This document shows, piece by piece, positions 3,501 through 63,149 of a DNA stretch of 64,000 nucleotides. The stretch's first letter is position 1, and the number at the start of each line of letters is the position of its first letter. Source of the DNA: Dicyema japonicum (lineage: Eukaryota; Animalia; Dicyemida); assembly GCA_011109175.1 (NCBI GenBank), contig RDEW01000017.1, positions 616,568 to 680,567 on the forward strand, read 5' to 3'. Both the position numbers and the translations under genes were made by a program. The notes below the pieces were generated by a model. It saw nothing but the letters and a program-made list of their open reading frames with translations, made no database searches and was not told where the DNA came from.

Positions 3501-3544
3501 GGAACGAGTCAGGATCGAGGAGTTTATTTTTTTATTTTATTTAT

Positions 3545-5100
3545 TTAACCCAAAACGACGGTAAAACCAAACTAATTATCACGTGATCCCGATGCATTCT
3601 AACAGAGACCTCATCTTTGCCCTTAATTTTCAGGGCCACCTTCCCGTGATCTGGAGTCTAGTCTCATAAGGGCCTTTAGAGGCGTTGGTACGGTTCGGTG
3701 ATCTTCACAAATCCAACGCTCCGTTACTCTGTAAGCCCTCTTTTGCATTTCCTTAATCTTCCTCACATCTGTCCAAGATATGGACGGTCCCCACGAGGCG
3801 CATGCATATGAGAAACATGGCTCGATGTATTGTTTGTATACGTTCATCGAAGCCTCTCCAGGATTTTTGACATGGAACATAGTAGTGACACCGGTTTAGA
3901 AGACGCTGGGTCATCTCTCGGTCTTCCTGGTTTTAGTATTGGCCGTATTAGTGCCTGTTTCCATAATAATGGTATCACATTCTGGTTAATCGAATAGTTG
4001 AAAACCGACGTTAGAAAAGTAACTCCCCCGACTTCAAGATTTTTTAAATAAATAACAGGAATGTTGTCTGGTCCGTGGGAGTATGTCGTTTTTGCGGAAT
4101 GTATTGTATCCCTAACCTCTCTCTTCGAAAAAAAAGTGGTTCTGATAGTCTCTTTAGTTTCCTGCCTAGTAGTGTATCAGACTTCATGTGCTCCTTGTGT
4201 GAAATTTTAGTATAGTATTTTGTCAAGTTGTTCACATCTCTTTGAACATAATCCTCCTCTGTTGAAATTTCATCGCTTTTTACCACATTTCGAATAGCTT
4301 TCCACATTTCTCCCGCAGTGCGATTTCTATCTACCATTGTAAGCACAATTCCACTTCAACCTCTGGGTCTTGAGCTCTTTGGCCTTTATTTCATTATTCA
4401 ATGTTCTGATCCGGAGTTTCATATCCAAGGTTATCCGGTTAGATTTTTTAAGCTGATTTCTTTTTTTAATCAAGGCCGTCTTCCCTCAACCACTCGACGA
4501 ATTTAAGTAATGTTTGGATATATCACTTGATATTGCTTAGAAGATTATTTGGGTAAAGTTTCCAGTTAGCGATACAATTTCCTGTTAGCACCTTTGTAAT
4601 TGTAGCTGCTAAGAATTCTCCTCATGTTGGCCTCTTTATGATCTTCATCACATTTTGATTATGGTCGCTTCTTGTTTCGTAGAGGAATGACCAATCAATT
4701 TTTGATGAAAGCGACGATGAGCAGAGTGTTATGTCCTGTGAGGTAAGTTATTTTGTCTCTCTCAGTGGTGTCTTGTATTTCTAGATGGATCATTCAATAT
4801 CGTTAGGGAGTCCGTTTGCGATAATAATAGTTCCCTCTCATGTCAGCTAGTTAAGGGATGCTTCGCATTCAAATCCCAGCAGATGATGATCTCATTGAAG
4901 GAATACAGTCTTGATAGGTTTGGCATAACATAGCTCTTCGGGCAGGAACCAGGAGGCAGAACGTAGATATTCACAAGGCATAGTCCTCCTTCCGTTGTCC
5001 CGAGCGAGATTCCAATAATTTCAAATCTACGAATGAGGAAACTCTTTTGTTGGTAATTGAAGAGGGTTTTAGAGCAATTGGAAGTGTTGATTGTGAATTA
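3545..5100 (-). mobile_element. Degenerate I-group LINE (APE fragment, RT C-terminus, conserved 3' end)
   Basis: ORF 3623-3880 YKQYIEPCFSYACASW (RT C-terminal region); APE-like LCLVNIYVLPPGSCP near 4950-5000; family 3' motif GGGATCACGTGAT at 3583-3590 followed by an A/T-rich tail. Confidence 0.7.
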
Positions 5101-27863: not shown

Positions 27864-29207
27864 ATGTCAAGTACAGCTGATTAATCAAAAATAGGTAACC
27901 TTAGAAAAGTCCCTCACAATTTACAACTCTCAAGATGTGTCCGAGCTGACAACGGGGCGCAAATATTTACGTTTAGCATGAATTATGGAGTCCGCGAAAA
28001 TATAAATCAGAACATAATTGAGACGACTGTGGGGCACCACGATTGGGTGATTTCCTTCCCAGTCTCAGAAAAACATTTGGGGGCATCACTTGAACTAAAA
28101 AATCCGTCAGAACATTTCAATGTTTACGTTGATTTCAGATTTTATCTCCAGTCACCGTATTTTCGTAAATTGGTAGTTTTAGGAATCATTATACTGAAAA
28201 TGAGACATTTGGGGAAAACAGCACGATATTTAATTCATCGTCGGCAGTAAAATGTCGTAAAGCCTTTGTGTATTTGGGAGATATCGAGGACGTCAATTTT
28301 TGATGGAAAATAAAAGTTTGATGATTATCGGCTTCGAGCTCTACAACTCACATACGATATTAAATCAACATTTCAAACTCCAAAGCGCCCCCAATTTTAA
28401 TTATGGGAGACAGATATGCCTCGTCACCTCAAAATTCTATTATGGAGGATATCGCTGGAGCACAAATTTATATCCGTTTGGGGTCACTCAGAAAAACCCC
28501 AACATTCTTGTCATCAATATCAACAGGCTGGCAACCTCCGCTCAAAGATGTCGTCTTCAATATCGAGTCAGGTTCCCTGGAGTCAAAAATGTACAATCAG
28601 ATGTTCTAAATCAAGAAATAAGCGATCAAGTTTCAGAAGGATTTGAGGTAAATATCAATGTCTTCAAACTTATCGACGAAAATTCAAATACCTTTAAATT
28701 TGAATTGTGGTTGTTAAGTTTCTCCATTATTTATACTCTTCCCCTATCTCTGAAGTGCCCAACTTTTAACTTTCAACAAACTCTCTTGAAACTCGGTTTA
28801 GAACTAAAGAACGAAGATAAGAGACTCAACATAGATGTCCACCCATTAGATCTCGACAAACTTGGACCTCTTCAGCATAAAAAGGTCGTCTTTGGGATCG
28901 GTTTGATACCCAACATCAAAGGAAAGCCGGTTCTCAAGTTATCTCAGTCTCCCATGAAATTACACTATTTTAAACTTACCAAAGTTCCCCATGGTATTTT
29001 TTCTCTCCCATTTGACTCAGATGAGGTTATATGTGAGTTATATTGCAGATGTTTTCACTTCAGAACATTTATTCTAATAACGGGGAACTACAAATAGAAA
29101 TTGAACACGAATGGTCGATGATTATGGAGAATATAACTCTGACTCGAATCGACGAGATAAGCCAATTACAGAAATATCAAATCAAGTTTTTTATTGGTTT
29201 AACGTAA
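27864..29207 (+). CDS. Tandem MATH/TRAF-like domain protein, 4 exons
   Basis: Long beta-rich frame; SKFYYGGYRWSTNLYPFG is a MATH-like strand motif. Introns of 24, 26 and 23 nt join the ORFs; one missing T at 28297-28301. Resembles (from memory) an uncharacterised invertebrate multi-MATH family. Confidence 0.72.
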
Positions 29208-34859: not shown

Positions 34860-37460
34860 AAAAGTTAATTACTAACTAAGTGATCCCGGTTTTCCGGGTT
34901 CTGGCTCGTTCGGGGTCCTCGAAGATCCAACAGAATTGGTAGAAACGGGGACGGTCTCATTCTCCATAGATTTCCCGCATTTTCTAGATAGTCAGATATA
35001 GAGAGTGAAAGCGGATATCCGGGTTTTTATTGCCCACTGTAGAAATGACTTCACTCTCCACCTTAGGTGTCTTTAACATTCAATACGTTATCCACAGTTT
35101 TCTTATTATTATTTTCAAGGCAGCAAGTTGTGCGGCTTCTAATTTTTGAGACGACGATTCAGAAATCATCGAGCTCCAGGAGGGACATGCGTATTCGATT
35201 ACTTGTCTGTAAATTTTCTGTAGTAAAAAGGTGTTGTGGCCGATTGGTGATCGGGATAAAATTTTCAATATGTTGGTCCTCCTCCTGACTTTGTTAATAA
35301 CGTCATTGACGTGTTGGTTGAATGTCAGGAGAGTATCCAACTTTAATCTTAGTATTGTTGGAGACTTATTCATAGGAATTTCATATCCAAACAATTTGAT
35401 TTTGGGAGAGTATAATGATCTTCTATATGTAAAGAAAATTGTTATAAACGACTTTCCTGTAGAAACTTCCAGTCGATTTGATGTGAGCCAATGTTCAACA
35501 TACCAATATAACTTTGAAGTTTCATCCCTGCCTTCTCATAGTTAGAGTCTTTCGTCGCAAGAACAATGTCATCTGCGTATGAGAGTATCAATGTATCGGG
35601 ATCATCATTGGTGGGAAGGTCATTGGTGAACAAGTTGAAGAGCAGGGGAGAGAGAGGTGAAGCTTGAGGGACACCATTCGGCAATAAACAGGATTTAGAT
35701 TTTCTGTCGTCTGACATCACTTGTCCTCTTCTTCCATTTAGAAAGTTCGACAGCCATCTTTTAATGTTTGTATTTATAAGAGTGTCAGAAATTTTCTCTA
35801 TAAGCAGCGTCCGGGATACGGAGTCGAATGCTTTCTTCAAGTCTATTGAAGCCATTATGGTCCTTTTATGTGGTTTTGGATAGGAGAATCCATCAGATAT
35901 ATATGAGTTAATTTTGTTAAGTGAGTCGTAGTAGAATGATTTTCACGGAATCCATGCTGGAATACTCGATTTGGTACAATATTTTTGATTCGTGTTAAGA
36001 TTAATTTTTCTAAAATTCGGGAAATCGCACATAATATTGCAATTGGACGATAAGAAGAGGGATCGTTTGCGGGTTTGTTTGGCTTCCGAATTATGGATTT
36101 CTTCCATATAGAAGGTATCATATTATTGTTCACAGATAGAGTATAAACGTATGATAGGAATTTGGTTGCTTTTTCACCAAGGTGTTTCAGTTCCATCATC
36201 GAGACATTGTCAGCACCTCGGGAACGGGAATTTTTGGCATCCATGATTGCGTTTCGAACTTCTTGCGGAGTAAAGACAATCAAATCATATGATGGATACA
36301 ACTTCTTCTTGTAGACTCTGTGTTCCCTAGAAAAATATTTATGGCTGATTCCGACATAGTGTTTCATTAAAATATTTAGGTCGATGTTGCTACATTTCTG
36401 TCCGTGGAGGTCTTTCTCAGAACCTTCATTGCATTTTCTCAAATATTTAATTTTCCTCTATATCAGCGTCTCGGATGTATTTGGCGATAGAGAATCAATA
36501 AGTAATGTCCATCGCTTCTTGATTCTATTATTTTATTTATTTTTCAAGAATTTCATTTTTTGGAAATCGTCATTTGATAATTCCTTTTGCTTCTTTAATT
36601 TATTTCTTTCTCTGATAGGTGTTTTTGTATGCATATTAATATAGGTATTTCTTGTTTGATGGCATCCCATTGGGATAAATAGTTTTCTTGCTTTGAGTAT
36701 AATGTCCGTGAAAGTTTTGATCATGTGGTCAATTGATGAGAATACCAATGTGTAGAATACTTCCATATTGGTGTCGATGTAATTAGAGAAGTTGGACCAA
36801 TCTGCGCTTTTAAAATTTAAAAAAGTGGAATTCTGTCTGATAAATTTTTTTTCAGTGTTGATTTTCATCATAATAGGGTTGTGATCACTTCTTAGTTCAT
36901 ATTTTGCAGTCCAGTTGATGAGGGGAAACATTGATGGGGAACATAAGGAGAGGCCAGGGGATGTAGGTTTGTCTCCTTTTCGAGTAGGTGTTCTTGGCCA
37001 GTACCCACTTGGACAGGAGGTAGTAGGGGGAATATATACATTGACAATATTTATAGTTTTCCTAGGAATTCTAACATTTATGGCAATTAGTTCCAAAAGG
37101 TCATCTTCTGGATAAAGTTTTCGGATTTTGTTTTAAATATCTTTAGATTGAATTCCATTTCTTAATAGTGTCATTAGTCCTCCACCAAACTTAATCTTTC
37201 TGTCTTTACGGATAACGGAGTATCCGGGAAAGGTTGGAGTTGGTATGTTTGCTTGTAGCTTTGTCTCTTGGACTAGAGCAATGTCAATTTCATTACTATT
37301 GAGTAAGTGGCGGACTTCCAGCACCTTGTTTCGTATTCCGTTAATATTGATCTGGACCAGGTTGATTTCAGGGCCTGGGTTGGATTCGACGTCACCACAG
37401 AAAATTAGTGCGTACCTGGAAAACCATCCTCCTTCATAGATAGGGATAGGGAAAGTGTAG
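34860..37460 (-). mobile_element. Near-full-length I-group (Ingi/Vingi-like) LINE: 2A-APE-RT, frameshifted
   Basis: APE QININGIRNK, IALVQETKL, GGGL, SDHNPI; RT YRPIAIL, QHGFR, DLKKAFD, GVPQASPLSPLLF, YADDI; 3' motif at 34880-34887. Confidence 0.88.
37370..37393 (-). other. 2A-like motif DVESNPGP immediately N-terminal and in frame to the APE domain
   Basis: Translation YALIFCGDVESNPGP-EINLVQININGIRNK. Confidence 0.85.
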
Positions 37461-40299: not shown

Positions 40300-42660
40300 A
40301 TGAGGACGCAATTAACCATGTTTCCAGAACATCTCTTCCCTGCCTAATCTTTGGCAAAGCAAACGATATTAGTGGATAATCGGCATTCAATGTTCCCGTT
40401 GCCCCAATTTTGGACACCTTAAATGCTATAAAGTAACAAGAAGGACCGCACAATCTCTGCCAAACTGGTCATGCCCTCATGCCTCGGGAATACCGGCAGA
40501 AGGAGAGAGCTCTTCCCTGGACCTATCTAACACAAATGAATCCTACGCCGTTTGAATCGTCTTGTGTCGGAGCGGATTATCCCACTCAGGATCCCAAGAT
40601 AGGCACGTCTAACAGCTGGCTCCTGTCTTTCAAAACTAATCACCAGGGCAGTCGATGACAATACTCAAAATGCCTGGATACGCCTTTTCTGCTTCGCATC
40701 TATTGTCCTCGGATCACACCAGACCGAACTGAATGAAGGGAACCTCGAATCAATCACTACGATAAACGTCTCAAAATACGATACTGTTAACCTGGTGACT
40801 GCACTGTGAGATCATTAGATTGCTAACCATTCGCTATCATCGTCAAGGATCAAGAAATACAAGAGGGATATACGGAAAGAAGTAGATAAGAAGGTCATGA
40901 TCGGAGACATGCCAGAGCAGCGAGCAAGACTAAGTCCCCAACTGGGGGTTGGAATTCCTCATGGATGCGAGGCAGTAATACACTCAATCAGGAACTTTAC
41001 TACCAGTCCGCCAGACACTACGAATAATATAATAGTCAAACTGGACATACGCAATGTTTTCAATAGCATTCGCAGAGACAGAATCATAGAAGTTAGCATT
41101 TCTAGGAAACTTGCATACGGCTCCTCATGTACCCTGATATTCGGGCAACACATCATTGAATCCAAAACTGGAGTTCAACAAGGTGACTTTCTTGGCCCCC
41201 TGCTCTTCGCCTTGGGTATCGAATGTGCAGCATCAACGATGCGAACTCCATTAAATTTATGGTACCTTGACGAAGCAGCTGTCGGAGGTAATTGGGAACT
41301 TGTGGTGGTGGAAGTCAAGTCTGCCATCTCTGCACTTGAGGCACTAGGGTTGGAACCGAACCCGTATAACTGTGAAAATTATAAAACGTTGCTTGCGGAT
41401 AAGAAGACTTCTGCCGTGCAGTGGCCGCTATTTCTGCTCACCTCCGCGATGTATCGGTTACCAACTTGAAAATGCAATTTTTTGACTCTCCCCTACACTA
41501 TAATAATGTGTCAGCTCTCCTGGAGGAAAAAATACATCACTCCTACAATTCACATTAAATTTACAAACCCTGGACTCCACATGGCTTTGTTCTTTCCTCA
41601 GGAATTTCCGCCTAACTTTTTCTTCTACGGACATCCCATGTTTCACGGACATTAACTTTTTAAGAGTCATCGTCGAGAAGCTGAGGACTGCCGTTGAAAA
41701 AACGCTCAATATTTCTTTGATGAAACTGGCTGGATCTAATGCAAACTACCTCTTCGCTACGGAGGAATCAGAAAACGCTCACGACTAGAACTCTTTCTTC
41801 GACATATGCTTCCAGTGCTCTCACACGCCAGATCCTACGCTACATTAACGGATCGGAGCTGAACCAGTGGTATGCATGGCTCGGGAAGTTTGGTCGCGAC
41901 TAGGTGTTGGATTCCGAAGAACGCTAATAAACAGCGAAAATGGGACAAGCTTTTATGCTCAAAGATCATAGAAGAGATAAAACCTGTGCTTGACCAGCAT
42001 CGTCTTGCTTGTCTGGCTTCTGCATGATGAACGAGAGCTCAGAGTATTACCATGTACCTCACTTGGGACACTACTGGATGACGACGCAACGAGGATTGGG
42101 GTTTCCGTCCGCCTCGGAATGGATGTTTACACGATCCATCGGTTTAGATGTGGAGGAATGGTCGACACGAAAGGACTTCACGCTCTCTCCTTCTGGAAGA
42201 GTGCTGGAAGGAGTCCTAGACACGCCGCAATCAATGGATCATTGCTTGGGTACTTAAAACTGCCGGATTTCCTGTCTAATTGGAAGCGCTTGGACTTGCT
42301 CCAGCCAACCAACTACGGAACTACTGTCTTCCCATGGGAAAGCGGTAAATACTTGCCTCGGACGCCAACTGTAAGGATAGCCTTTCTCCCTCCAACCTTG
42401 TTATGCCAGCAACTAACAAGCGCTCTGCTTCGGAGAAGTCTGAGACCCTAAAGAAAAAGAAATACTTATGTCTCGGTAGACAGTCCATTTTTGAACCAGT
42501 CCCAGTGGAACCGTCAGGAATAATAGGAAGAAGGTCACGGATCCTGCTAAACAGAACCGGATCGCTCATCGCGTAAAAAAATGATAGGAGAGAAAAGAGC
42601 TGCTGATTGAGCGCATTTCCTTGCAAATCGTCAGGGGAAATGCGTTCTAAATTACGAGAT
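40300..42660 (+). mobile_element. CRE-clade non-LTR retrotransposon (RT plus RLE), frameshifted
   Basis: QLGVGIPHGCE, VKLDIRNVFNSIRRD, GVQQGDFLGPLLF, WYLDE; SLGTLLDDDATRIGVSVRLG, CRCG-like finger, RHAAIN. Confidence 0.85.
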
Positions 42661-43974: not shown

Positions 43975-44950
43975 TAACTATGGGGGAGAGCGGCTGCTGA
44001 CATCACGGAGTAAGCGTTTCCGCGAACAACTGCGATACCAATTCTTTGCCTCAGCCAGACCGCTTCCCGCACGTTTATCTTGCGGTGGGCAATTTTCCCC
44101 CGATTTCCTTTAGGAAAGAGGCTGTAATACTTCCAGCCGCACCAGACGTCTCGATTGCTACCGGTACAAAACGGTAGCGGTCTCCAATTTCGCCATATTT
44201 TTTAATCTTGATTTTCTCGGCCAGATCGGCTGCCGATCCAGCAGACTGCGCCGAGCTGAGCATCATCGAGTTCGAGAAAGAATCCACAACAGTGCAGTCC
44301 CATACGAGCGATTTTCCCTCAGTGAACGGAAAGATAGTTAACCCATCCGGTCTTTTCCCATCTCCGCGGTCCAATCCCACAGGTTCCAGTACTGCCGGGA
44401 AGCCTGCCGCTTCAAGAGCTCGCAGGACAATGTTGTTCATAGCAGCATGGCGGGGTGCTCTGCATGCGCTCCTTTTGCACGAGAACGGGTGCAGCCCTTT
44501 GGCATCGACGATCCCTCCACAGCGACATTGTGTTCGACGCAAACATCAGCTCCCAGGCGTTGTGCGATTCCAATCCGAATACAATCATCGTCCAATAGGG
44601 TCCCCAGGGAGGAACACTGGAGTGCATCCAGCCACGCTCCGCTCCCATGGTTGGCGGCGGACACGAGGCATGCAAGACGATGCTGGTTGGCCTCAGACTT
44701 TAGCACGTCGAAGATATTCTTGGAGTAAATATCATCCCAGTCACGTTGCCTCGAAGGATCGTTCGGCATATCCAAACCAGTTTCACACCATTCGCAACGA
44801 GCTTCGTCGAAGACTTTTTCCCAAGAGAGTCCGGTTGTAGGTCAAAGGCAGGAGCGAGCACGCAGCCCGCTGAAACATCTTTATACATCCAAGGTGGAAA
44901 AAGTCACGGCAAGACGAGCAGAAAAGTCCATATTTGCGTGCATTGGCAAA
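43975..44950 (-). mobile_element. CRE-clade 3' half (best-preserved RLE domain)
   Basis: SGAWLDAL, CRCGG...GLHPFSC, RHAAMN, KRPDG...WDCT...KIKKY, PVAIETSG, VVRGNA. Confidence 0.9.
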
Positions 44951-46900: not shown

Positions 46901-47103
46901 TTGACTCAAATATTTCAGACTACGTGGAGTCATACCATAGAAAGTACTAAACTTACATACTTCAGGATTACATATTGTGTGTAACATGGGGGTTCATCTC
47001 CCATTTTTTTAACAATATAGGTTTTCACAAAAAAAACTAAAAGACAATGTTATCGATATACAACGTAGATTACATTAATGAAAACGCTTATGTAATCAAA
47101 AGA

Positions 47104-47486
47104 CATACCTACTTCCTGTCCCTTCAAGTAAGGAGACAGGTGTCTAACAGCCATACCTACTTCCTTTCCCTTCAAGTAAGGAGACAGGTGTCTAACAGCC
47201 ATACCTACTTCCTGTCCCTTCAAGTAAGGAGACAGGTGTCTAACAGCCATACCTACTTCCTGTCCCTTCAAGTAAGGAGACAGGTGTCTAACAGCCATAC
47301 CTACTTCCTGTCCCTTCAAGTAAGGAGACAGGTGTCTAACAGCCATACCTACTTCCTGTTCCCTTCAAGTAAGGAGACAGGTGTCTAACAGCCATACCTA
47401 CTTCCTGTCCCTTCAAGTAAGGAGACAGGTGTCTAACAGCCATACCTACTTCTGTGCCTTCATGTAAGCAGACCGGTGCCTAAATA
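47104..47486. repeat. 48-bp tandem array, 7 near-identical units plus 1 diverged
   Basis: Unit CATACCTACTTCCTGTCCCTTCAAGTAAGGAGACAGGTGTCTAACAGC starting at 47104, 47152, 47200, 47248, 47296, 47344 (49 bp), 47393 and 47441. Confidence 0.97.
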
Positions 47487-49179
47487 TTCTTAAAATATTT
47501 CTAACTAGTAATTTAAAAAAATAAATTAAAAAATTAAGTTATTCGAAAAGTCTCAGTTTTGTCCGACTAAGACTTTATGAATTATTAGGTTTTTCGACAT
47601 CTCTAATGACTCATTAGCTATTATTTATGGTCTCCTGAATTCTCTGATCCCATATCCTCAACATGTGAGATGACATCAGCGCTGTTAATATGTAGCATCA
47701 CATCCAACTCCCAGTATTCCTCATCATCACTCCATATTATAAACGATTCGTCAGATTGCAGAATTTGTTGCATTTCTGATTCTACGATGTAAAACTGGGG
47801 GAACTCATCGTCAGAATCACTATCGGTTACAAAGTCGTCTTTTTCAGGTGATACAAAATTAAAATCGTGCTTATCCTCATCACTACACATTTTTTCGGAG
47901 TAGACGGGAGTTGCTTATATATTTGGCGTGGACCTACGTAAATCAATATAAGGAATTCACAAAATTGTACTTCCTCAATTCATTTTATGAACAAAGTATC
48001 ACCTTTTTGGCTACTGCGAGGGATTTTAATACGAAAGTAGAGTCTAAAGAGATCCGTTGACAGAAGGCATCGCTCGAAGGCATCGTGATTGTATGGAGGA
48101 GCGGGGATTGGGGCAGCTCAGGACATTGTTCGGAGTAATTGACACAAAAAAGGCTTTGAGCTTCGAGATTACAGACTTGATGGATGCTTTTTCAGACACA
48201 AAATATGAATGATATACCCGGGATCATCGCGATGGAAAAATAATTCGGTGAGACGTTTATGTGGACAGCTGTGAATTTCATTTTTTGAGATTATTGATGC
48301 GGATCTCAAGTACGTGTACTTTGAGAATTTGCTTAATGCTCCAATAGAAATATTCTATTTACACGTGGACATTCCACAACTAGAAATATTAATAATACTT
48401 TCAAGTGTCACTAGGTTATCGACTAACTGAAAAATAAACCTACACTTGATAATCTTGTTTAATATTCTACAAAAAGTCTTGAATCACATCAGGGATCAAT
48501 TGGGCAATTATTTTGCACAAACTTATAAGGAACTCGGAAATTAATGGCTGTTCTAGTCTGGAACCTCAAATCACCAAATTGTATCAATACCTGAATACAT
48601 CTCACGACATGAGAAGGTTTGTACACGACCGTGAAAAGTGGGTGCCTAAGTTATCTAAAACAGGGGTCTACAGTTCAAAGTAGAGGTCAAGACCAAGCCG
48701 AAGAACAACTAAAACTGTATTACTGTCAAGCAGAGTACCAACTGCCGGTAGCGGAAGGCATTGAACCAAGACCCTAAATTCTCAGCAGAGGTTGAATTCA
48801 GACAGTGGAAAGATGGGTATTCGAGGACCTTTCAAGTTCATTTAGCTTTTTTCACAAAGGATTTCATCCGAGTCCTTTTAAGAAGTAAAGTTCTTAGAAA
48901 ACCAATCCCGTTTGCTGTCTAATCCTGCAGAACTGATTCAAATACAAGGTCCAGACTCAATTCGAGGCGGAAGAATAAGATTGAGCGACTCATCCAGAAT
49001 CAGAATTATTAGGCACTTAATAGTTATTGATAGTTCTTCCGATATCAGTGTCATTTGAATATGTTCTAAAGAATACAATGCTAATAAAATAAAGAAAATA
49101 TTGAGTTAGACTTAGAAAAATGAATTTTTTGTTCCTTAATATTGAAGCTGATTTATTATTATTATAAGCACTTATCGCT

Positions 49180-52380: not shown

Positions 52381-53211
52381 TTCTACAAGTAAATGAGGAT
52401 AAGGTAACTCAACTAACTAAACAAAAATGAATGACTTCATCCACTCTGAGATATTTGACTGAGGTGGATCCGTCGAACAATTTTATTTCAGACACCACAT
52501 GACTAAATGAGATATTAACATGCGATGCTCATCATTAAAATTATCCGCAATCGAGGACACTGCAATAAAGTTAATTGGACCAGAATTTTTGAGCTGATCC
52601 CTTATCACATGAGAAGAGGTGTTCAGGATTCTCGACCCCGCAGAGTCACCTCTCCTTGTGGGTCTGAATTCACTTAGTTAGTTGAGAACGTTTATTTCCT
52701 TCATTTTGATCCAATGATCCTGAAGGCAATAATAATAAAAACCTGTGAAAATTGAATCTCTTTTCCCCAACCAGCTTGTAGAAATATTTCGTGACTTTTG
52801 AAAAAAAAATTGCGTATACTAGACATATTTTGATTTAAGCTTAAATTTGCAATGAAATAACAAAATTACCAAATCTTTTGGTTAAGAAACTTCGTCCAGT
52901 TAATAGTACCCCAAATTTGATATCTAATATATTGCGACTTAAATTTGGAGGTAAATATAATATCCATCCTTGATCTTCTCCAAAAATACTCATTTTCTTG
53001 CAGCTAGTGAACATCGAATTCAGCTTCTCCACACCTATACCTAAATCACCCAATTAATTCAACGTGAATGTTCTAGTAATGTCAGCACTTTCCAAATTTA
53101 ATGTAATGTCTAGGAGCCCATTTAGACGTGCTGTCGTCAATATTTTAATTTAAGACTCCGTTGTTCAGTGAGTCTAGCATGCATGAGAGTATTCCGACTT
53201 ACAACATCGGG

Positions 53212-53518
53212 TTGTTAGCAACATCTTGCATCTCAATTTACTATTTTGGCAAAATGAAATTGGAGAATACTTAAGCCTTAAAACGATCGATCTGGCAAAC
53301 AAAACTAATTTTGATAGTTTTTGCAGTCAATAAATCTCGTGTCCAATTAATGAGACAAATATTCNTTGTTAGCAACATCTTGCATCTCAATTTAATAGTT
53401 TGGCAAAATGAACTTGGAGAATACTTAAGCCTTAAAACGATCGATCTGGCAAACAAAACTAATTTTGATAGTTTTTGCAGTCAATAAATCTCGTGTCCAA
53501 TTAATGAGACAAATATTC
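53212..53518. repeat. 153-bp tandem duplication joined by a single N (likely assembly overlap)
   Basis: Copies 53212-53364 and 53366-53518 differ at a few bases; N at 53365. Confidence 0.9.
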
Positions 53519-53994
53519 GACTTCGCCTTGTATGTTTGGTATCAATAGAACATTCTTTCTCAATTGGGCAAGTAGTCCTGAGCCAATAACAATACTTACC
53601 TCGCAAGGATGATCCTGTCACAAATCTTATACCTTTTAATATTTGAGGCGGCATGTTTTCGTAATTTTTCTCGAAATATTTTTCATGGTGATATTTGCTG
53701 GTGTTCTTGGATCTATTCTTTAAATGTTGCCAAACAGAATCCTACATGCTTGTGTGACCATACCTATGACTAGAGCCATTTTTGAAATAAAGTCAACAAT
53801 TCTAATGTTCTTTATAATTGTTTAAAACTTATTAAAATTTCATTCATTTTATTGATTTTTATTTTTTAATTTTTCAAATTTTTAAATAAAATAATAGCTT
53901 CGATCAATAATCATTATATCTTTCTGTGCTATGCTCTCTACTGTTAGCTACTTTTGAGGTTTAGCTTGCATTCATTATAGAGCTGAAAAAGTTT

Positions 53995-54620
53995 TTGTTT
54001 TGTTCGACGATTTCGATAATCGGGGACAGAAATACACAGTGTTCGAGTGCGTATTGGAAAATGTATGTCGCGAGAAATCGTGACAACAGTGGCCATACTC
54101 GAGGAGACTTCCTCCTTCCAGTATTGTTCGCTGTATACCTTGAATCTGTTCTAAGAGATCTCCGGAAGTATTACAGGGACGATATTATGGAAATTGTTTA
54201 CGCCGATGATGTTGACTTTGTCTCGAACAACAAAGATGCACTTATACGTTTACTGGAGGTAGCACCTTCCGTCTGGTTAAATGCTCTATATTAATGAGCG
54301 CTTCGAAGACGGATGTCGTCAAGTTCAAGGGGATGGAACCAGCAGTACCTAAAACTGAAAGAAAACCATAAAACTTGTATTGCTTCTTGGGGACTCCGAT
54401 GTCATTGCAAGAAGGAATTTGTTATCTACGGTGACCATGCAAAAGCTTTTGAAAGGATGGATTCAAAGGCGTGTTGTCTGCACATCACTCCGAATCAGAT
54501 TGTATGAGGCTACCGGGATACTAACTCTGGAACATGGGGAATCTCAAAAACCTTTGACAAAGGCTCGACTACATAGGAATCAACTTCGGTCTCTTGGGAT
54601 TGAAGTTTGCCAATGCTTGT
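53995..54620 (+). mobile_element. RTE-clade RT fragment
   Basis: GDFLLPVLFAVYLESVLR, YADDVDF, LLGDS. Confidence 0.75.
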
Positions 54621-55142
54621 AAGGGGTAATATGTGTTACAAAAAATGTTTTTCTGGAACTCTGAGTATTTTTAATAACTTATATTAATGCCATGATTAAT
54701 TTTATGACAGTACACAAAATGAGATAATAACTTTTTTTAATATGCAAACTATATTTTTAAACAGTATATTTTGCTCGGCAATTTAAAATTGGAAACTATG
54801 TATTTTTTCTAAACAATCAAAAATTAAAGAATTTAATATTACTAGTTAAAGCAATATGAAAACCAGCTTTATATGGATCAGAACAAAGAGTTATCCCAAC
54901 CAACACAAGTTATCAGAAACCATTCCCGTGATCGCAGCGACAACCATTAAAGTGCATTAAATCAGATTAAGAAATACAGCATACTTTATTCCAGGTTTTA
55001 TATGTAAGACTCTTTTGTATCCTCTAAATAGCTACTTTGCCCATTAGCCACACTTTAGCGGCCTGTAGTTTTTGTCCTTATGTAACCTAAACAATTATGC
55101 ACATAATCTCCGCCAAACTGTTTGATTCCTGGATTGGGGGGA

Positions 55143-55378
55143 GTAACGAATTCCGTTAGACTGTTCTTACATAAATGTTAAGGCGATACTTTACTAAGAA
55201 AATTTAACGTCTCCATTGCTGCCAAAAGAGCTGGTTATGTCTTTAAAAGATTTCGCTCAAGTAACGAATTCCGTTAGACTGTTCTTACATAAATGTTAAG
55301 GCGATACTTTACTAAGAAAATTTAACGTCTCCATTGCTGCCAAAAGAGCTGGTTATGTCTTTAAAAGATTTCGCTCAA
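55143..55378. repeat. Exact 118-bp tandem duplication
   Basis: Units start at 55143 and 55261. Confidence 0.9.
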
Positions 55379-56498
55379 AGTCCTGTTTACTTGATGGATA
55401 CGTAATTGGCTATTTTGAAGAATTTTTTTAACAGTAGCTATTGCTTTCTCCCTAGAGACTTTGTCACTCTTAGCGGCCACAAGATGGATTAGTTAGTTGC
55501 CATCTTCATTATTGATGGCAAAAAAACTTGGCTTTCAGATTATTGACTAGTTGTGTGCACTCGTATGTTTTTCTAGTCCGTTTTCTAATCTTTGCATTTC
55601 CTCTATAAATCATAGAAGATATGCTTCTGTATCCTGATATATCTCTATGACCCAAGAATGACTTGGGTTTATATTATTATTTTTTCTCTCACTAGCAATA
55701 TATTGTTGACTCATTTCGTTAAAAGATTTGTGGACAAATGAATTTGGAGACATTCTCAGCCAATAGATCCGGTGAAAGCACATGCTCGCGCTGGAATCTG
55801 TAACTGAAGGAAATCAGAGAGTCTTCCACCCATTCGTGGAAACAGTTTATGTTCTTAAAATTTAGTATTACAAGTACTGACTCTCAACCTATTTACGACT
55901 AACCTATTTCATTTATTACACGTGCTCACCTATATCATTCTACTAGACTTCATAATGATAAAATTCTGCAGTTTTTTCTGGTCTCCTTCATTCCTGTTAA
56001 TTTGCATTCATTGCGTACGACAGAGATGTCTGTCTCAGATTCATTGTCTATAAAAAGATCGGGTATCTCTCTCTAGTGGATAGCAAGTCGTTAATCAAAA
56101 CTGGAAACTGTTTTTCGGAGATCTAAGAGTCTAGGAATATGTCTACCCGCGCATCAACAATTAAAAACATTTTGAAGAGGTTTTAGAGACCACATCACTG
56201 TAAAGCTAGCAAATTCCGTTTTATTGTCGTTGATAGAATATTCCTTACGGAAAGTGACTTGGAGGTCTCAGGTCCATTAATAAAGACTAAAGTATTAACA
56301 AACTTTGTTTTCCTGATCACTCATCATCAACCAAAAGACTATGGCCAGACTCTACATATTCAAGTTACCTCGAAGGTTTTCCAGTATTTTGATAAAAAAA
56401 TAAACCTGGAACATCGTATCTTCGAAGAGAAAGAGATTCATTGCAGGATTTAACTCGTTGTAGTTTTGAGATCCTCAATTAGTAGCCTTCGTGAAGTG

Positions 56499-56714
56499 TT
56501 GACGTTTGTGATCGGCAGATAGTTAGGTTCTCTATCCTTCTAAGAATTGTGAGTGATAATACCAGAGCAAATGGCAATAAACGAAAAGATGTGTGAATAA
56601 GGCTTTTTGACGTTTGTGATCGGCAGATAGTTAGGTTCTCTATCCTTCTAAGAATTGTGAGTGATAATACCAGAGCAAATGGCAATAAACGAAAAGATGT
56701 GTGAATAAGGCTTT
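56499..56714. repeat. Exact 108-bp tandem duplication
   Basis: Units start at 56499 and 56607. Confidence 0.9.
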
Positions 56715-57071
56715 TTCTTTTACATAAGAATGATTTATGTACGAATTCTGATACTGTCTTTTGCAGTTGCCGTCCACCACTTTCTATCAATACATCTGCA
56801 ACCACAACTTTGTTAGATTCTCGGAAGTTTTAACGTATTCGGATTCCAACTGTTTCCTGCGTTTAAATCAGACTATTATACTATTTCACATTAATATTGG
56901 CCCAGAGTTGAATCGGAATCGAGTTCAAATATTGGAATCAATTTACTCTATGGCTAAGGTTTGTTGGTCTTATTGCCCATGAAGTAGTGGAACAATTGGA
57001 AAGTCAACTCTGTAGTCAGTAAGGTATTTACGAATATCTGTCTTGACAATTTTCAAACGCCAAGACGAAAG

Positions 57072-57376
57072 AAAACACAAAGTATTTCTCGTAGAGTTCC
57101 TTTAAACAATCCGGGGGAGTGATCTCTGGAATCAGCATAATTTCCAGTAAACTGCAATATCTAAAAATCAATTTGAGGTTGAACATGAACGTGTGCAATA
57201 TCTGAGATTGGGGTTATCTTCTTNAAAACATAAAGTATTTCTTGTAGAGTTCTTTTGAACAATCCGGGGGAGTGATCTCTGGAATCAGCATAACTTCCAG
57301 TAAACTGCAATATCTAAAAATCAATTTGAGGTTGAACATGAACGTGTGCAATATCTGAGATTGGGGTTATCTTCTT
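57072..57376. repeat. 152-bp tandem duplication joined by a single N (likely assembly overlap)
   Basis: N at 57224; copies differ at a few bases. Confidence 0.9.
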
Positions 57377-58415
57377 GAATTGGGTCCTCGGTGTTTCCGA
57401 ACAACTCAAGACATATTTGTGACAGAATCGTTAAATTTGGATTTTCAGACTGAACTTCTCTTGCCTCGATTAACTGTTCACATAGGGAGACCGCCTCACG
57501 TCATCGGGGTCAATAAACAGAATCTCAGCCTCGAGACAATACGAAAGTTGCGTTTTTGAAATGAAAATTTTCGAAAATAATTGTAAGTCATGCTATTTCT
57601 AGCCCAACATTCCCAATGATAAATAAATTGATAGACCTCCACAAGTGCCGTCAATTGGACGACCTTTGGTATTTATTAAATTCATCCAATAAACATGATT
57701 AATCGTTATTTTTTAGATTAAGAATAGTTTCAACTTCTTGTCTGCTGAGTCTCACTAGATGTATGATTTCACTCAACTTAAATTTAAATTAATTTTTTCA
57801 ATTTTCTAAAGCTATCATCCACCCTTTACAGCCCAAATGACCGGAGTCGTTTATAACAGATCACGATTTTATTTGTATTAGAAGCATTCTAAGACTCGAA
57901 GATAATAAAATACAACAGTGGCCCAGTTAATCAATCAGAATTTTATCTTCCGAGGGACGTCCAGATAAACCTGGTTCGTCTTCGATGTGGCACGAACCCT
58001 CTCTACTGATGTACAATATCCTCTGTCATTTTTGCAACTCCTGCGTGTTGATAACATTTCACATATCTGAATGTCATCAATTAGCACAACGGTCATGTAC
58101 AATGCCGGAACTGAACGATATATAGAACCGACCGAGGATTGCGGTCTACGTAATAATTGCTGGCCTCCGACAAATTATTGAGGCCGGGTTTACTTTACAA
58201 ACTAACTTACTTAAAATTATTAAAGTCGGTCCACCACTCCAATGGAAAAGTTTCCACAACTGCAAGCTCCGGAAGTACTCTGTTTCTGTCGTAGTGAAAA
58301 CTGGATACTATTAACTAGTCGTCTACTTTTGACTTTTTTCACCGTGTATCCGCTGTTAATAAATTAAAGTCGGTTAATGTCCATGATCTTAAGATAATTT
58401 TCAAAAAGTTGAACT

Positions 58416-58661
58416 TTCTACTTAATAATCACATTTTGAAGTGCTAGGAAAAACAAAAAACTTAACGATGACAGTGCATGCCTATGACCAATTAAAGGTC
58501 ATTCTATCAACCCATTTTCTCCGAATAGGCCTTAAATGTTCTACTTAATAATCACATTTTGAAGTGCTAGGAAAAACAAAAAACTTAACGATGACAGTGC
58601 ATGTCTATGACCAATTAAAGGTCATTCTATCAACCCATTTTCTCCGAATAGGCCTTAAATG
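58416..58661. repeat. 123-bp tandem duplication
   Basis: Units start at 58416 and 58539; one mismatch seen. Confidence 0.88.
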
Positions 58662-59003
58662 CTAAAAGTAGATTATAGATTGGCTCTTTCAGCTTTCATA
58701 GAAGTTATTTACTTTTTGTAGTCGATAGAATTGTGCACTTGGCATGCCTTGTATAATAGATAACGAAACCTTTTTTAAAATTCAAATTCAGCCAATAATT
58801 CAGTCTGGACAGCCGGATTCAATGTGTAGCTGTTGACATCACAACATAATAATTAGTTATTATTAACTAACTAATCACAACAAAATATATGCTCAAATTC
58901 AAAAATCACATTTATTTAATGCATATTTTTATTATAATTAATATAAAATTTATTATTAAATGTAATAACTAACGGTTAAATCGCAAAAATTTTGAGTTAT
59001 TAT

Positions 59004-60903
59004 TAGGGCAATTTAAGTGCTAAAATGCTATTTTTATTTTTTATACTTTTTTTAAATATACAATTGAATTTGGAATAATTATTTTTTAATTTTGTTAAAA
59101 AAAACATACATTATAATTGCTATAAGTGCTATTTTTAATTTTAAATGCTAATTTTTGTTTAAATGCTAATTTAAATTGCAGTTAATAATGTGTTTACGGA
59201 TTCCGAAATTCGCGGAGCACTCCTTCGGCTGAATAACAACAGAGCAGCTGGCTATGACAATATTTGTATGGAGTTGTTAAAATACGCACCAACCCAGCTA
59301 GCAGAAAAGATAACTTTCATATTCAACGAGATATTCAGGACTCATTGTTCAATTGACATCGCGATGAGAGTTCTACTTCCTTTACAAAAACCTGGCAAAC
59401 CTGCAGGTCCAATTGAAAATTTCAAGCCGATCGTGCTTTTGACCACTTTGCGAAAAACATTGTCGATTACAACATTGAATCGAATATCAAATTCAGATGA
59501 CCAATACTTGTCACAAAGTCAAAGCGGATTCAGACCAGGAAAATCAACTGCTGATATAGTATGGAGTCATCGTTAGCTTACGGCAATATGTAAGAAGTAC
59601 ATAAAAACAATATATACTCTGGGAGTCGACTAATCAAAAGCATTCGACTGTGTCTGCCGAGATAAACTATTGCAAGCTCTCAAGGACATAATTGATGAGG
59701 ACTGTTTGATGATTGTGCGTTTTTTGCTGGCTGACACGAGCCTCATAGTGAAAGTGGGGAAGGGCTATTCGGAAATATTAACGACCGGCATTGGTATTCC
59801 GCAAGGGGACTCGCTTTCGCCAGTTCTCCTTGCAATCTATTTGGAAGCTGCGTTGAGGAACGTTAGGAAAGAATTAGGTCACTTAAATAAATATTTTGTT
59901 GAATTAATGTATGCTGATGACATCGATTTTGTGTCTGAGGATGTGGTGGTAATAAGAACTGTAATAGATAAAGCCACAACAGTTCTGGAGAGGTGGTCTT
60001 TAAAGATCAATTCAGAAACGGAGTTAACTTCGATTCAGCGGTTACCGACACGGATTGATAAGAAATGGAAGTTTACTAAAAGGCTCGGCTCGTTTTTGGG
60101 TGATGCTGAGGACATTGCTCGCAGAAAGATGTTAGCATCGTGTGCACTAAAAAGATGTGGAGTATTTGGACTCGCAGAAAACTTATCTTCTTACATCTTC
60201 GGATGTGCTTATATAGCGCGTTCATACAACAAGTCCTATTATATAACTCGGGAACATGGGGAACATCAAAAACGGAACGTGACTGACTAGACACATTTCA
60301 AAGAAATCAATTGAAAAAAATAGCGGGAATTAAATGGCCACAGATTATCAAAAAAGACACTCTCTACAAATTATGTAAATGCAAACCGATAAGCAGAGAA
60401 GTAATTACCTCACGTTGGCGACTTATCGGACATGTTCTGAGAATGGACGAAGTGATTCCTTGCAATCAAATGATGGAAGATTACTATTATACAAGGACCT
60501 CATTTTGATAATGACAAGGCAAATATCAAAAATTATATAAATAAAAGAATGGAGGAAAATGGATTTAAACTTATTATTGAAATGACTGAACCAAAAATTA
60601 GCCAACAAGATTATTTTTCTTTTTCACGCTGTCAGGCATTTTATGCATCTGTTGAAAGAGCTATTAAAATGCTAAAAAATATTTAAAAAAAAAAGATAGG
60701 AACTTCCATCCAGACAATCCAGGCATTAACTTTTATTATACAATAAATAAAATTTAAATGTTATATTTTATTATTTTAAGTTATAGATTTGACAAATTTA
60801 AATGCTAGATTTTATCATTTTAAGTGCTAACTTTTTTAATTATAATTGCTAGATTTTGTGATTTTTTAGCGCTAAAAAAATTTGATAGAAACAACTTGCC
60901 CTA
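59004..60903. mobile_element. hAT-type non-autonomous element carrying an RTE insertion
   Basis: TIR TAGGGCAA...TTGCCCTA; perfect 8-bp TSD GTTATTAT (58996-59003, 60904-60911); TGCTA subterminal repeats at both ends. Confidence 0.85.
59190..60520 (+). mobile_element. RTE-clade retrotransposon RT, 5'-truncated
   Basis: NNRAAGYD, QSGFRPGKST, GIPQGDSLSPVL, YADDIDF, RWRLIGHVLRM; internal stops. Confidence 0.9.
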
Positions 60904-62695
60904 GTTATTATTATAAGTAACATGCTTGGAATAACTTGGCCACGTGGCACCAATTGAATCATAAAAACACCGTCATAGCCATAATGAAATCATGAAATCG
61001 CTAATATTTTATTATGTCGCAATCAATATTAAATATTTTATTTATGCTTTTTAATATTGGTTGCAATTTTACCAATTAATGATTAAGTAGTCAAATACAA
61101 TCTGATTTTTGATTACCATTAGATTTGGGAAATAATTTTTTTTTAACTTGAAGACTTTTCCCTATGGACTTTAACCTTTTTTAAAATCAACATATTGTTA
61201 ATTATAATATAGGTAATGAGGGCAATTTTTTAGAACGAGGGTTCCATTATGGTATGCAGGCATTAAGCACTCAAGGAATTATCTCTGGTGAGCCCAATGC
61301 CTTGGAATATACAACGTGTCATTCTAGGATGTTCTTCTTTAGTACTGCAAGTCGCCCGATCAGCCTTGTAAACTTTTCCGTTATGGTCCAATCATATTGA
61401 AAAATACGTTTGTTGTCATAGGAAATAGGTTTTCAATTCTGAGAGCTACCTGCCTTGACTGAAATTAATTTCTAGTAATTTATTACTGTTTGATTATAAA
61501 TAATAAGTTATAAAAATTAAAAAAAGTTTTATTATTAGAATATCAACAAAGTAAGATTGATTCCAGAGTATGAGATTGGTTATAGGATAATATGATGAGA
61601 TTTGAGATTCTGTATCGTAATTATATTAATATTAACCACCTGTTGTATTAATGAACCTTTCGGTGTTGTTAATTGCCAGTTGAAAGGGATGAGAAATTTT
61701 GTAGATTTCATTTTACTCAATGACACCACTAAAGGCGAGATTCTCCCAAGAATTATGGTAAGACATTTAAGCTTTCCAGACGCTCGACTGTGTGATTTGA
61801 AGAATATTAGTAGCTGCGATTTTCCATTTGACTCCATGAAGTTATGAAATAAAGTTAATCTCAAAATTGAGTGTTTATCCAGAATATTTAATGAATGACT
61901 ACCCAGAGTGTTCGACCAATTCTGTTGATAGAATATTATTTGACAATTACTTGTATTTAACAGAGAAAATAGTTTCCATATCATTATGATTGTTATAATA
62001 ATGTTAATTTATCACAATATTTTAATTCTCGTATGATTAGAAAAATGGGTGAATTAACGGCCATTAAAGAAAATCTTCGTCGTAGAATATTGTGTAAGAA
62101 ATATTATCGAAATATTACGTAATGTGTCATTATGGCTTCTCTAGACAATAAATTTACGAGTGGGAAGTGCCACACATTTGGAATATATCAATTTTGATTA
62201 AAAAATATGTCCGCAATTTTCTAAAAAATACTTGATTAATGATTTTGGTATTAAATCATGAATTGTGGCTTTGAAGAGGCTGATTATTTAGGGGAATATA
62301 GAATATGTAGAAATGTTTGTTATAATGAAAGTACTGTGAGTAGTTTGAAAATGTTTATTTACTTATAATTATGTCTGAAAACAGTCCTTATATACTGATT
62401 CTCTGTTTTCGTTTGAAATTGTTGAAAAAATAGGAAAAGCGAGTTTATTAATAGGCAATCATTCATTGTAACGTCATCTTTATATTAAATGTTGCGCAAC
62501 TTTACGTTAGATTACATAATTAAACAGTCAATAATTCAATTTAGATCAATTAGAGGTTTCTCTGGGATTTGTGCACTTGAGAGCTAGAGGTTTACGAGAT
62601 TATTGAAAAGGGACCAAGACTTCCTTCTTATCGAAGCAGTAGTCTTTAATCATTCGCATGTAACTTGAATAAAGTTCTACTGAGAGATAACCTTC

Positions 62696-62975
62696 TACTA
62701 TTCAAGAAATATATCTAAATATCCCTTTGCTTTCCGAAAGCAGATGATACTCAGTCGAGTACTTTCATGATACTATTTTCAGATTTGAGTTGAATTCGTT
62801 AGAATCCATAACTTTATATATTTTCAGAAATTTTTTTACTATTCAAGAAATATATCTAAATATCCCTTTGCTTTCCGAAAGCAGATGATACTCAGTCAAC
62901 TCCCTTCATGATACTATTTCCAGATTTGAGTTGTTTTCGTTAGAATTAATTACTTTTTAGATTTTCAGGAATTTC
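62696..62975. repeat. ~141-bp diverged tandem duplication
   Basis: Units start at 62696 and 62837; identical first half, diverged second half. Confidence 0.8.
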
Positions 62976-63149
62976 ATTTATAGATTCACCCGATTAAATA
63001 TTTTACTCATGTACGCAAGTAAAAAGGGGACAATGCTATATTTACATGTGAGTATGAACGCATTGAGTGATCCATGCATCCCTCTAACGAGATGATTTAT
63101 TGGTATTTCTTCAGGTTCCACTGCTTACATTTTCTTAGTCGGTTTTTGT

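Follow-up and report, generated by a model that had tools for sequence, protein, structure and literature searches.

We report that a 64-kb window of the Dicyema japonicum genome (contig RDEW01000017.1 of assembly GCA_011109175.1; the window is the whole 64,000-nucleotide stretch analyzed) contains the decayed remains of a dynein heavy-chain gene. To judge from its sequence, the locus is a relic of an axonemal outer-arm beta dynein heavy chain of the DNAH9/11/17 type. Profile searches and frameshift- and intron-aware alignment detect colinear dynein remnants on the minus strand over ~55,033-57,700, giving a relic of about 2.7 kb. We consider it likely that this is a non-functional, unprocessed pseudogene fragment: a dead duplicate in a ciliated host and not a trace of cilium loss.

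Extent and class of the dynein relic

All positions given here are those of the window, and residue numbers are those of L001, one of ten full-length references for the beta chain of the outer dynein arm (ODA-beta). The reference set was obtained by using a fragment match (P0035) to scan metagenome and metatranscriptome contigs, which yielded ten contigs; each is about 13.5 kb long and has one open reading frame (ORF) of about 4470 residues. L001 itself is a DNAH17 ortholog, matching end to end with 6540 bits. When a profile hidden Markov model built from the ten references was run with hmmsearch against all six-frame stop-to-stop pieces of the window, the best 12 pieces all fell on the minus strand, all between 55.2 and 57.6 kb, and in strictly colinear order, with E-values down to 1.4e-10. 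Likewise, tblastn with the ten references returned significant matches solely at 55.1-57.5 kb on the minus strand and, at relaxed thresholds, only noise in the rest of the window. Pfam scans of 20 stop-free pieces, which are too short for such searches, gave just a weak Dynein_AAA_lid match.

The architecture of the relic was resolved with a GeneWise-like aligner written for the profile, which scores codon matches, frameshifts, stops, GT..AG introns and free insertions. Four segments, covering residues 2105-2135, 2243-2379, 2398-2452 and 2756-3196, descend in window position along one strand. The first of them (57603-57700) probably represents the start of AAA2 up to the first P-loop residues (residues ~2105-2135; match KVVQL..L.EV....F.IGN.G.), with a frameshift-aware total score of 54.7 against at most 42.8 for shuffles. 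Upstream of the relic there is a weaker colinear trace, an LDVPRK match at ~57,947-57,970. Between the first segment and the second, the AAA2 core (residues 2136-2242) has been deleted. The second segment, at 57000-57587, comprises the end of AAA2 and the AAA2 lid (residues 2243-2379), with five frameshifts and 58% identity to the ODA-beta consensus. The AAA2-AAA3 junction at 56776-56995 (residues 2398-2452; two in-frame stops, one frameshift) is marginal, scoring 46.4 versus 24-43 for shuffles; it is colinear, and ..KL.P.FELD.. is recognizable in it. In place of the AAA3 core there is a spacer at 56492-56775 with no homology, which contains an artifactual 108-nt duplication; about 300 codons (residues ~2453-2755) are gone. 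A preliminary description of this DNA had already noted that most of AAA3 appears to be deleted. The remaining block, at 55033-56491, includes AAA4, the first coiled coil of the stalk (CC1) and the beginning of the microtubule-binding domain (MTBD). It covers residues 2756-3196 and contains 22 frameshifts and five in-frame stops; over 413 codons, its identity to the consensus is 46%.

No signal above noise was found for residues 1-2060 and 3197-4466 in the whole window. Upstream, the tail and AAA1 scored 41, no better than shuffles (37-45), and downstream, everything distal to the MTBD start, AAA5 and AAA6 included, gave no convincing alignment (29.8 versus 21-27 for shuffles). The preliminary description had extended the relic over 53,050-63,100 and listed blocks from the tail, the end of AAA2, AAA4, the stalk and, weakly, AAA5, in this order. 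Our profile searches and alignment support the core at 55,033-57,700 with the end of AAA2, AAA4 and stalk in the proposed order, but not the span of about 10 kb. The supposed tail block scores within the shuffle range, and nothing of AAA5 is detectable beyond the MTBD start. A 20-residue NYDKEN match at 49.7 kb, considered as a colinear MTBD remnant, was rejected because a reverse-transcriptase (RT) ORF of a long interspersed nuclear element (LINE) contains it in an alternative frame and its E-value is ~0.1 even in a 3-kb subject.

The class of the dynein emerges from comparison of five stop-free pieces of the relic with all PDB chains. Each time, the best match was DNAH9 or DNAH17 at colinear positions, with a best E-value of 2e-5. 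The minus-strand pieces at 57317-57430, 57031-57213 (E-value 2e-5), 56355-56474 and 55953-56072 correspond to DNAH9 residues 2319-2345, 2345-2384, 2786-2821 and 2904-2937, respectively. The fifth piece, located in the AAA4 lid (55722-55883, minus strand), corresponds to DNAH17 residues 2949-2986 and DNAH9 residues 2972-3015. The sole other dynein among the PDB matches was the Chlamydomonas outer-arm alpha chain, with a far weaker E-value, whereas inner-arm, DNAH5-type and cytoplasmic dyneins, all present in the PDB, were matched by none of the five pieces. In a tree based on 543 aligned columns, the relic falls within the ODA-beta reference set. Over these columns it is 44-50% identical to each of the ten references, while identities among the references themselves are 68-92%, and its branch length of 0.96 substitutions per site compares with 0.05-0.25 for the references. 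The assignment to outer-arm beta chains (DNAH9/11/17) put forward previously is borne out by the five PDB matches and the profile search; a best match to cytoplasmic dynein, or a non-significant one, would have spoken against it, and DNAH9/17 turned out to be both the best and a significant match. The motifs cited at that time (NLTIL, FKKITPI, ELYEKYFVF, MNLFLFEDTM, LINDLL..PDLF, RLENGL and DKVSREKA) are all present on the minus strand at ~55.0-57.7 kb, in the correct order, distributed over all three frames.

Micro-introns and disabling lesions

Within the relic, the alignment identified three GT..AG introns of only 24 nt, all on the minus strand and all in phase 0. They are located at 57314-57337, at 56123-56146 within AAA4, and at 55166-55189 on the CC1/MTBD boundary; the first recurs at 57161-57184 in a duplicated 153-nt copy (see below). 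The protein alignment is contiguous across each of these spacers, and each contains an in-frame stop. In five control runs, the same aligner called no introns. The three introns coincide to the nucleotide with those reported earlier. Two additional spacers, at 56363-56341 and 57036-57024, lack canonical ends and are possibly degenerate introns. In a 2026 survey of 51 animal genomes, introns this short were found only in myxobolid myxozoans and in D. japonicum (PMC13644364). Since GT..AG micro-introns have been kept, the relic is unprocessed and not a retro-copy of an mRNA. It derives from a gene already bearing micro-introns, and its death came after introns had reached ~24 nt.

The disabling lesions are numerous. 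In total, the aligner finds 28 frameshifts (5 + 1 + 22 over the three blocks), most of them deletions, and seven in-frame stops. An intact ortholog outside the profile, used as a control, produced no frameshifts, no stops and no introns, and substitution-only decay to 42-44% identity produced 0-2 false frameshifts and 4-10 stops. Given so few false calls in the latter control, nearly all frameshifts in the relic are real. According to the decay simulation, the identity of the relic corresponds to about 0.25 neutral substitutions per site or less, a value that replaced an estimate of ~0.4 per site based on the indel-to-substitution ratio. The Walker A motif (P-loop) of AAA4, at 56302-56331 on the minus strand, is destroyed: it reads VDDE-stop-SGKQS, where orthologs have VGVGGSGKQS, having been lost through several substitutions and one stop (TGA at 56319-56317). 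The dead AAA4 P-loop of the preliminary description was thus seen again, at 56331-56302. Unlike a functional heavy chain, the locus has no continuous spliced ORF, no intact set of AAA1-AAA4 nucleotide-binding loops and no full architecture. The ~28 frameshifts, the seven stops and the destroyed AAA4 P-loop exclude any motor product, and the relic is presumably not expressed.

Read contigs, haplotypes and assembly artifacts

A different reading of these lesions is that the locus is a live dynein gene, broken only through assembly or sequencing errors. To address it, we compared the assembly over 53200-59100 with contigs assembled independently from four DNA runs (2019) of one sample. Across unique sequence, the divergence between read contigs and assembly amounts to 2-3% substitutions, with an excess of transitions, plus a few indels. 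Because the haplotypes differ to this extent, just ~0.4 of the assembly 31-mers are present in the runs. This suggests either that the population was pooled and highly polymorphic or that the assembly represents a minor haplotype; over 53200-59100, the assembled haplotype is essentially absent from the read contigs. The read contigs show zero gaps over 54520-55141, 55260-56051, 56222-56498, 56607-57218 (except for a 16-nt indel) and 57360-57961, and these spans hold 27 of the 28 frameshifts. As there is no indel at these 27 sites, the frameshifts are common to two diverged haplotypes. The same result upholds the earlier claim that the decay exceeds sequencing noise.

The 16-nt indel is located at 57044, where all four runs have 16 extra bases compared to the assembly. 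If these bases are added, the end of the exon aligns better to orthologs and is followed by a spacer of ~23 nt starting with GT. In the assembled haplotype, then, a further 16 nt seem to have been deleted across the exon-intron boundary. A 1-nt indel at 55422 is polymorphic as well, and the relic locus is still accumulating indels.

A scan for tandem duplications detected six two-copy, head-to-tail duplications of 108-153 nt at 53.2-63 kb, a kind seen nowhere else in the window. One is a pair of 153-nt units, 96% identical, at 57072-57377, joined by a single N (57224); the read contigs break at 57218 and 57360, and the pair most likely reflects a failure to merge two contig ends or haplotypes and not a true duplication in the genome. 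Another, at 53212-53518, is an identical 153-nt pair with a single N. These two junctions account for both single-N gaps of the window. The read contigs skip two more of the six: they join 55141 to 55260, bypassing one of two identical 118-nt units at 55142-55377, and 56498 to 56607 within the 108-nt duplication at 56499-56714, which identifies both as assembly artifacts. The other two-copy duplications are found at 58409-58654 and 62693-62974. As a class, the 108-153-nt duplications look like gap-closing or contig-overlap artifacts of the assembly. The published D. japonicum assembly was produced with Platanus and Falcon, followed by SSPACE scaffolding and GapCloser (PMC6736024).

These duplications, two with single-N junctions and at least two artifactual, as well as the divergence from the read contigs and the low share of 31-mers found in the runs, are what the idea of a live but misassembled gene could draw upon. 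Nevertheless, 27 of the 28 frameshift sites show no indel in independent read contigs, the P-loop is ruined by several substitutions in addition to a stop, and about 400 codons of the AAA2 and AAA3 cores are gone, as are the tail, AAA1, AAA5 and AAA6. Moreover, the identity of the relic to the references lies 20-30 points below that between true orthologs. We therefore regard a live gene at this locus as extremely improbable.

Genomic surroundings of the relic

K-mer depth is unique-like over 54.6-57.7 kb (~70-480 across the relic in run X3) and 10-1000 times higher in the flanks (53.8-54.6, 57.7-58.3 and 58.9-59.1 kb), where it reaches 10^3 to 10^5 in the same run. Taking unique-like depth to mean single copy, we see the relic as an island of single-copy sequence flanked by repeats. 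Downstream of it, at 53995-54622 on the plus strand, lies a LINE-type RT fragment (RVT_1, E-value 1.2e-5), with a depth of 10^3 to 10^4 compared to ~10^2 for the relic. Upstream, at 59190-60508 on the plus strand, there are RT ORFs of the LINE/RTE type (RVT_1, E-value 1.9e-8). It had been proposed that RTE, LINE, hAT and CRE pieces are inserted into the dynein gene. Two plus-strand RT fragments with RVT_1 matches are indeed there, but both lie outside the relic, with no demonstrable insertion into it; the hAT and CRE pieces were not confirmed.

Such surroundings bring up the possibility that a gene fragment was captured and moved by a mobile element, either by transduplication or by LINE 3' transduction. 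The relic is an internal gene fragment with high-copy repeats on both sides, and it is situated between two same-strand RT fragments of similar family, all of which would fit this scenario. On the other hand, its unique-like depth implies that it is not carried in a multi-copy element, its GT..AG micro-introns rule out a retro-copied mRNA, and the loss of the AAA2 and AAA3 cores from within it shows that large deletions are sufficient to explain the missing parts. Taken together, this makes capture by a mobile element quite unlikely.

The rest of the window is likewise rich in mobile-element sequence, RT ORFs being dense in it. Its GC content ranges from 0.31 to 0.43 (~0.36 overall); for the D. 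japonicum genome, a GC content of 36.7%, 48.9% repeats and many LINE copies have been reported (PMC6736024). Positions 1-52000 hold four or more further ORFs with RT sequence, among them 35855-36442 (minus strand) and 40897-41469 (plus strand). Long ORFs at 28300-29097, 36533-37096 and 44208-44840 have no Pfam match, and none of the ten longest ORFs scanned resembled a live cellular gene. A minisatellite with a unit of 48-49 nt and at least eight units occupies 47050-47507, inside an ORF of 113 residues (47047-47388, plus strand). For the RT ORF at 59670-60287 (plus strand), the nearest relative is an uncharacterized protein (47% identity) from Octopus sinensis; molluscan endonuclease-reverse transcriptases rank next. 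O. sinensis is a dicyemid host. The relationship is compatible with shared spiralian ancestry, with LINE/RTE transfer between host and parasite, or with parasite DNA in the host assembly.

Origin and significance of the relic

What could a dead outer-arm beta gene mean in this animal? The headline of the preliminary description was a possible fossil of cilium or flagellum loss. This does not agree with the biology of D. japonicum, which has ciliated epidermal cells and ciliated larvae, and whose dynein heavy-chain cluster comprises 16 copies (PMC6736024). Because the host is ciliated and has this many heavy-chain genes, a dead duplicate is far likelier than a fossil of cilium loss. This points to the alternative that the preliminary description itself had offered for a ciliated lineage, a dead paralog. 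A plausible course of events would begin with the duplication, whole or partial, of a dynein gene with ~24-nt introns, the intact parent of which we infer to exist. The copy would then have died, losing the AAA2 and AAA3 cores by deletion and accumulating frameshifts and stops. At present the relic is probably functionless and drifting neutrally, as the 2-3% haplotype divergence and the polymorphic indels suggest.

Alternatively, the relic might be unitary, that is, the remnant of the sole outer-arm beta locus, whose decay would record how the outer arm, or motile cilia altogether, disappeared after the introns had been miniaturized. The retained micro-introns would agree with such an origin, and so would the unique-like read depth, if taken to mean a single copy. 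Protein searches are in line with it too, having revealed no closer relative in the same genome: a word-based search for near-identical proteins returned nothing, and a profile search of protein representatives with the best 61-residue piece yielded only short fragments of dyneins and two spurious repeat proteins, none of them usable as a full-length reference. The top fragment matches, checked for a parent from the same genome, were unrelated metagenome contigs only. The other animals documented to have such short introns are the myxobolids (PMC13644364). To our knowledge, their phylum lacks cilia, which might also be seen as favoring a unitary relic. Yet the silence of the protein searches means little, since they are blind to unannotated exons of the genome, and D. 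japonicum is ciliated, with its 16 heavy-chain genes (PMC6736024). A myxozoan-like host is not a good fit either: Henneguya salminicola has a GC content of 29%, and myxozoans are relatively poor in transposable elements (PMC13644364), as opposed to the RT-dense window. Furthermore, cilium loss in myxozoans is ancient, whereas a neutral relic still at 46-58% identity (at most ~0.25 substitutions per site) would be far too young. On balance, we find a unitary relic unlikely. The same can be said of a variant in which, once its introns measured only ~24 nt, the parasite dismantled a lineage-specific dynein or part of its outer dynein arm; this, too, appears improbable.

Several points weigh against a dead duplicate as we have described it. 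The intact outer-arm beta gene is assumed from the literature count of 16, in which the classes are not stated. The copy could have originated by partial duplication or as a full-length copy eroded by deletions, there being no visible remnants of the tail or the distal motor. Finally, the frameshifts were compared in the reads, while the seven stop codons are those of the assembly letters alone.

Taken by itself, the relic is of little weight and adds another dead gene fragment to a parasite genome rich in repeats. It would matter more if there were no intact outer-arm beta gene genome-wide; a unitary relic, if true, would contribute to a fossil record of reductive evolution that extends over the genome and contains more unprocessed pseudogenes than there are genes. 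As a dead duplicate, it indicates that the genome keeps recognizable, intron-bearing gene relics and that its reductive history could be read from pseudogenes. It also offers a local view of neutral decay in a micro-intron genome, with at least ~20 real frameshifts per 0.25 or fewer substitutions per site along with large internal deletions, small deletions being many relative to substitutions. The two-copy 108-153-nt duplications, some with a single N, constitute a class of artifacts that should be removed before any pseudogene census, as they would inflate counts of both duplication and decay.

Comparison with known systems

The closest known counterparts of the relic are human DNAH9 and DNAH17 (PDB 8J07 chain n9 and 9FQR chain I4, respectively), which are its best and almost only PDB matches from the AAA2 lid to the AAA4 lid. 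They share with it class-specific stretches, namely FKKITPI, the AAA4 entry motif and the WFHEW region of the AAA4 lid. In contrast to these proteins, the relic has only about 600 of ~4470 codons left and is devoid of the tail, AAA1, AAA5, AAA6 and the C-terminal domain.

With unitary ciliary pseudogenes of lineages that have lost cilia, the relic has in common that it is a decayed axonemal gene, in this case in the highly reduced genome of a parasite. It differs from them in that the host appears ciliated and has many heavy-chain genes, and in that the decay is too slight for an ancient loss. Unprocessed (duplicated) pseudogenes of animals offer the better parallel. Compared to typical examples, the introns are just 24 nt long, and the duplication is one that we infer. 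In other respects the relic resembles them closely, featuring introns, many lesions, unique-like depth, neutral-looking polymorphism that includes indels, and repeats all around.

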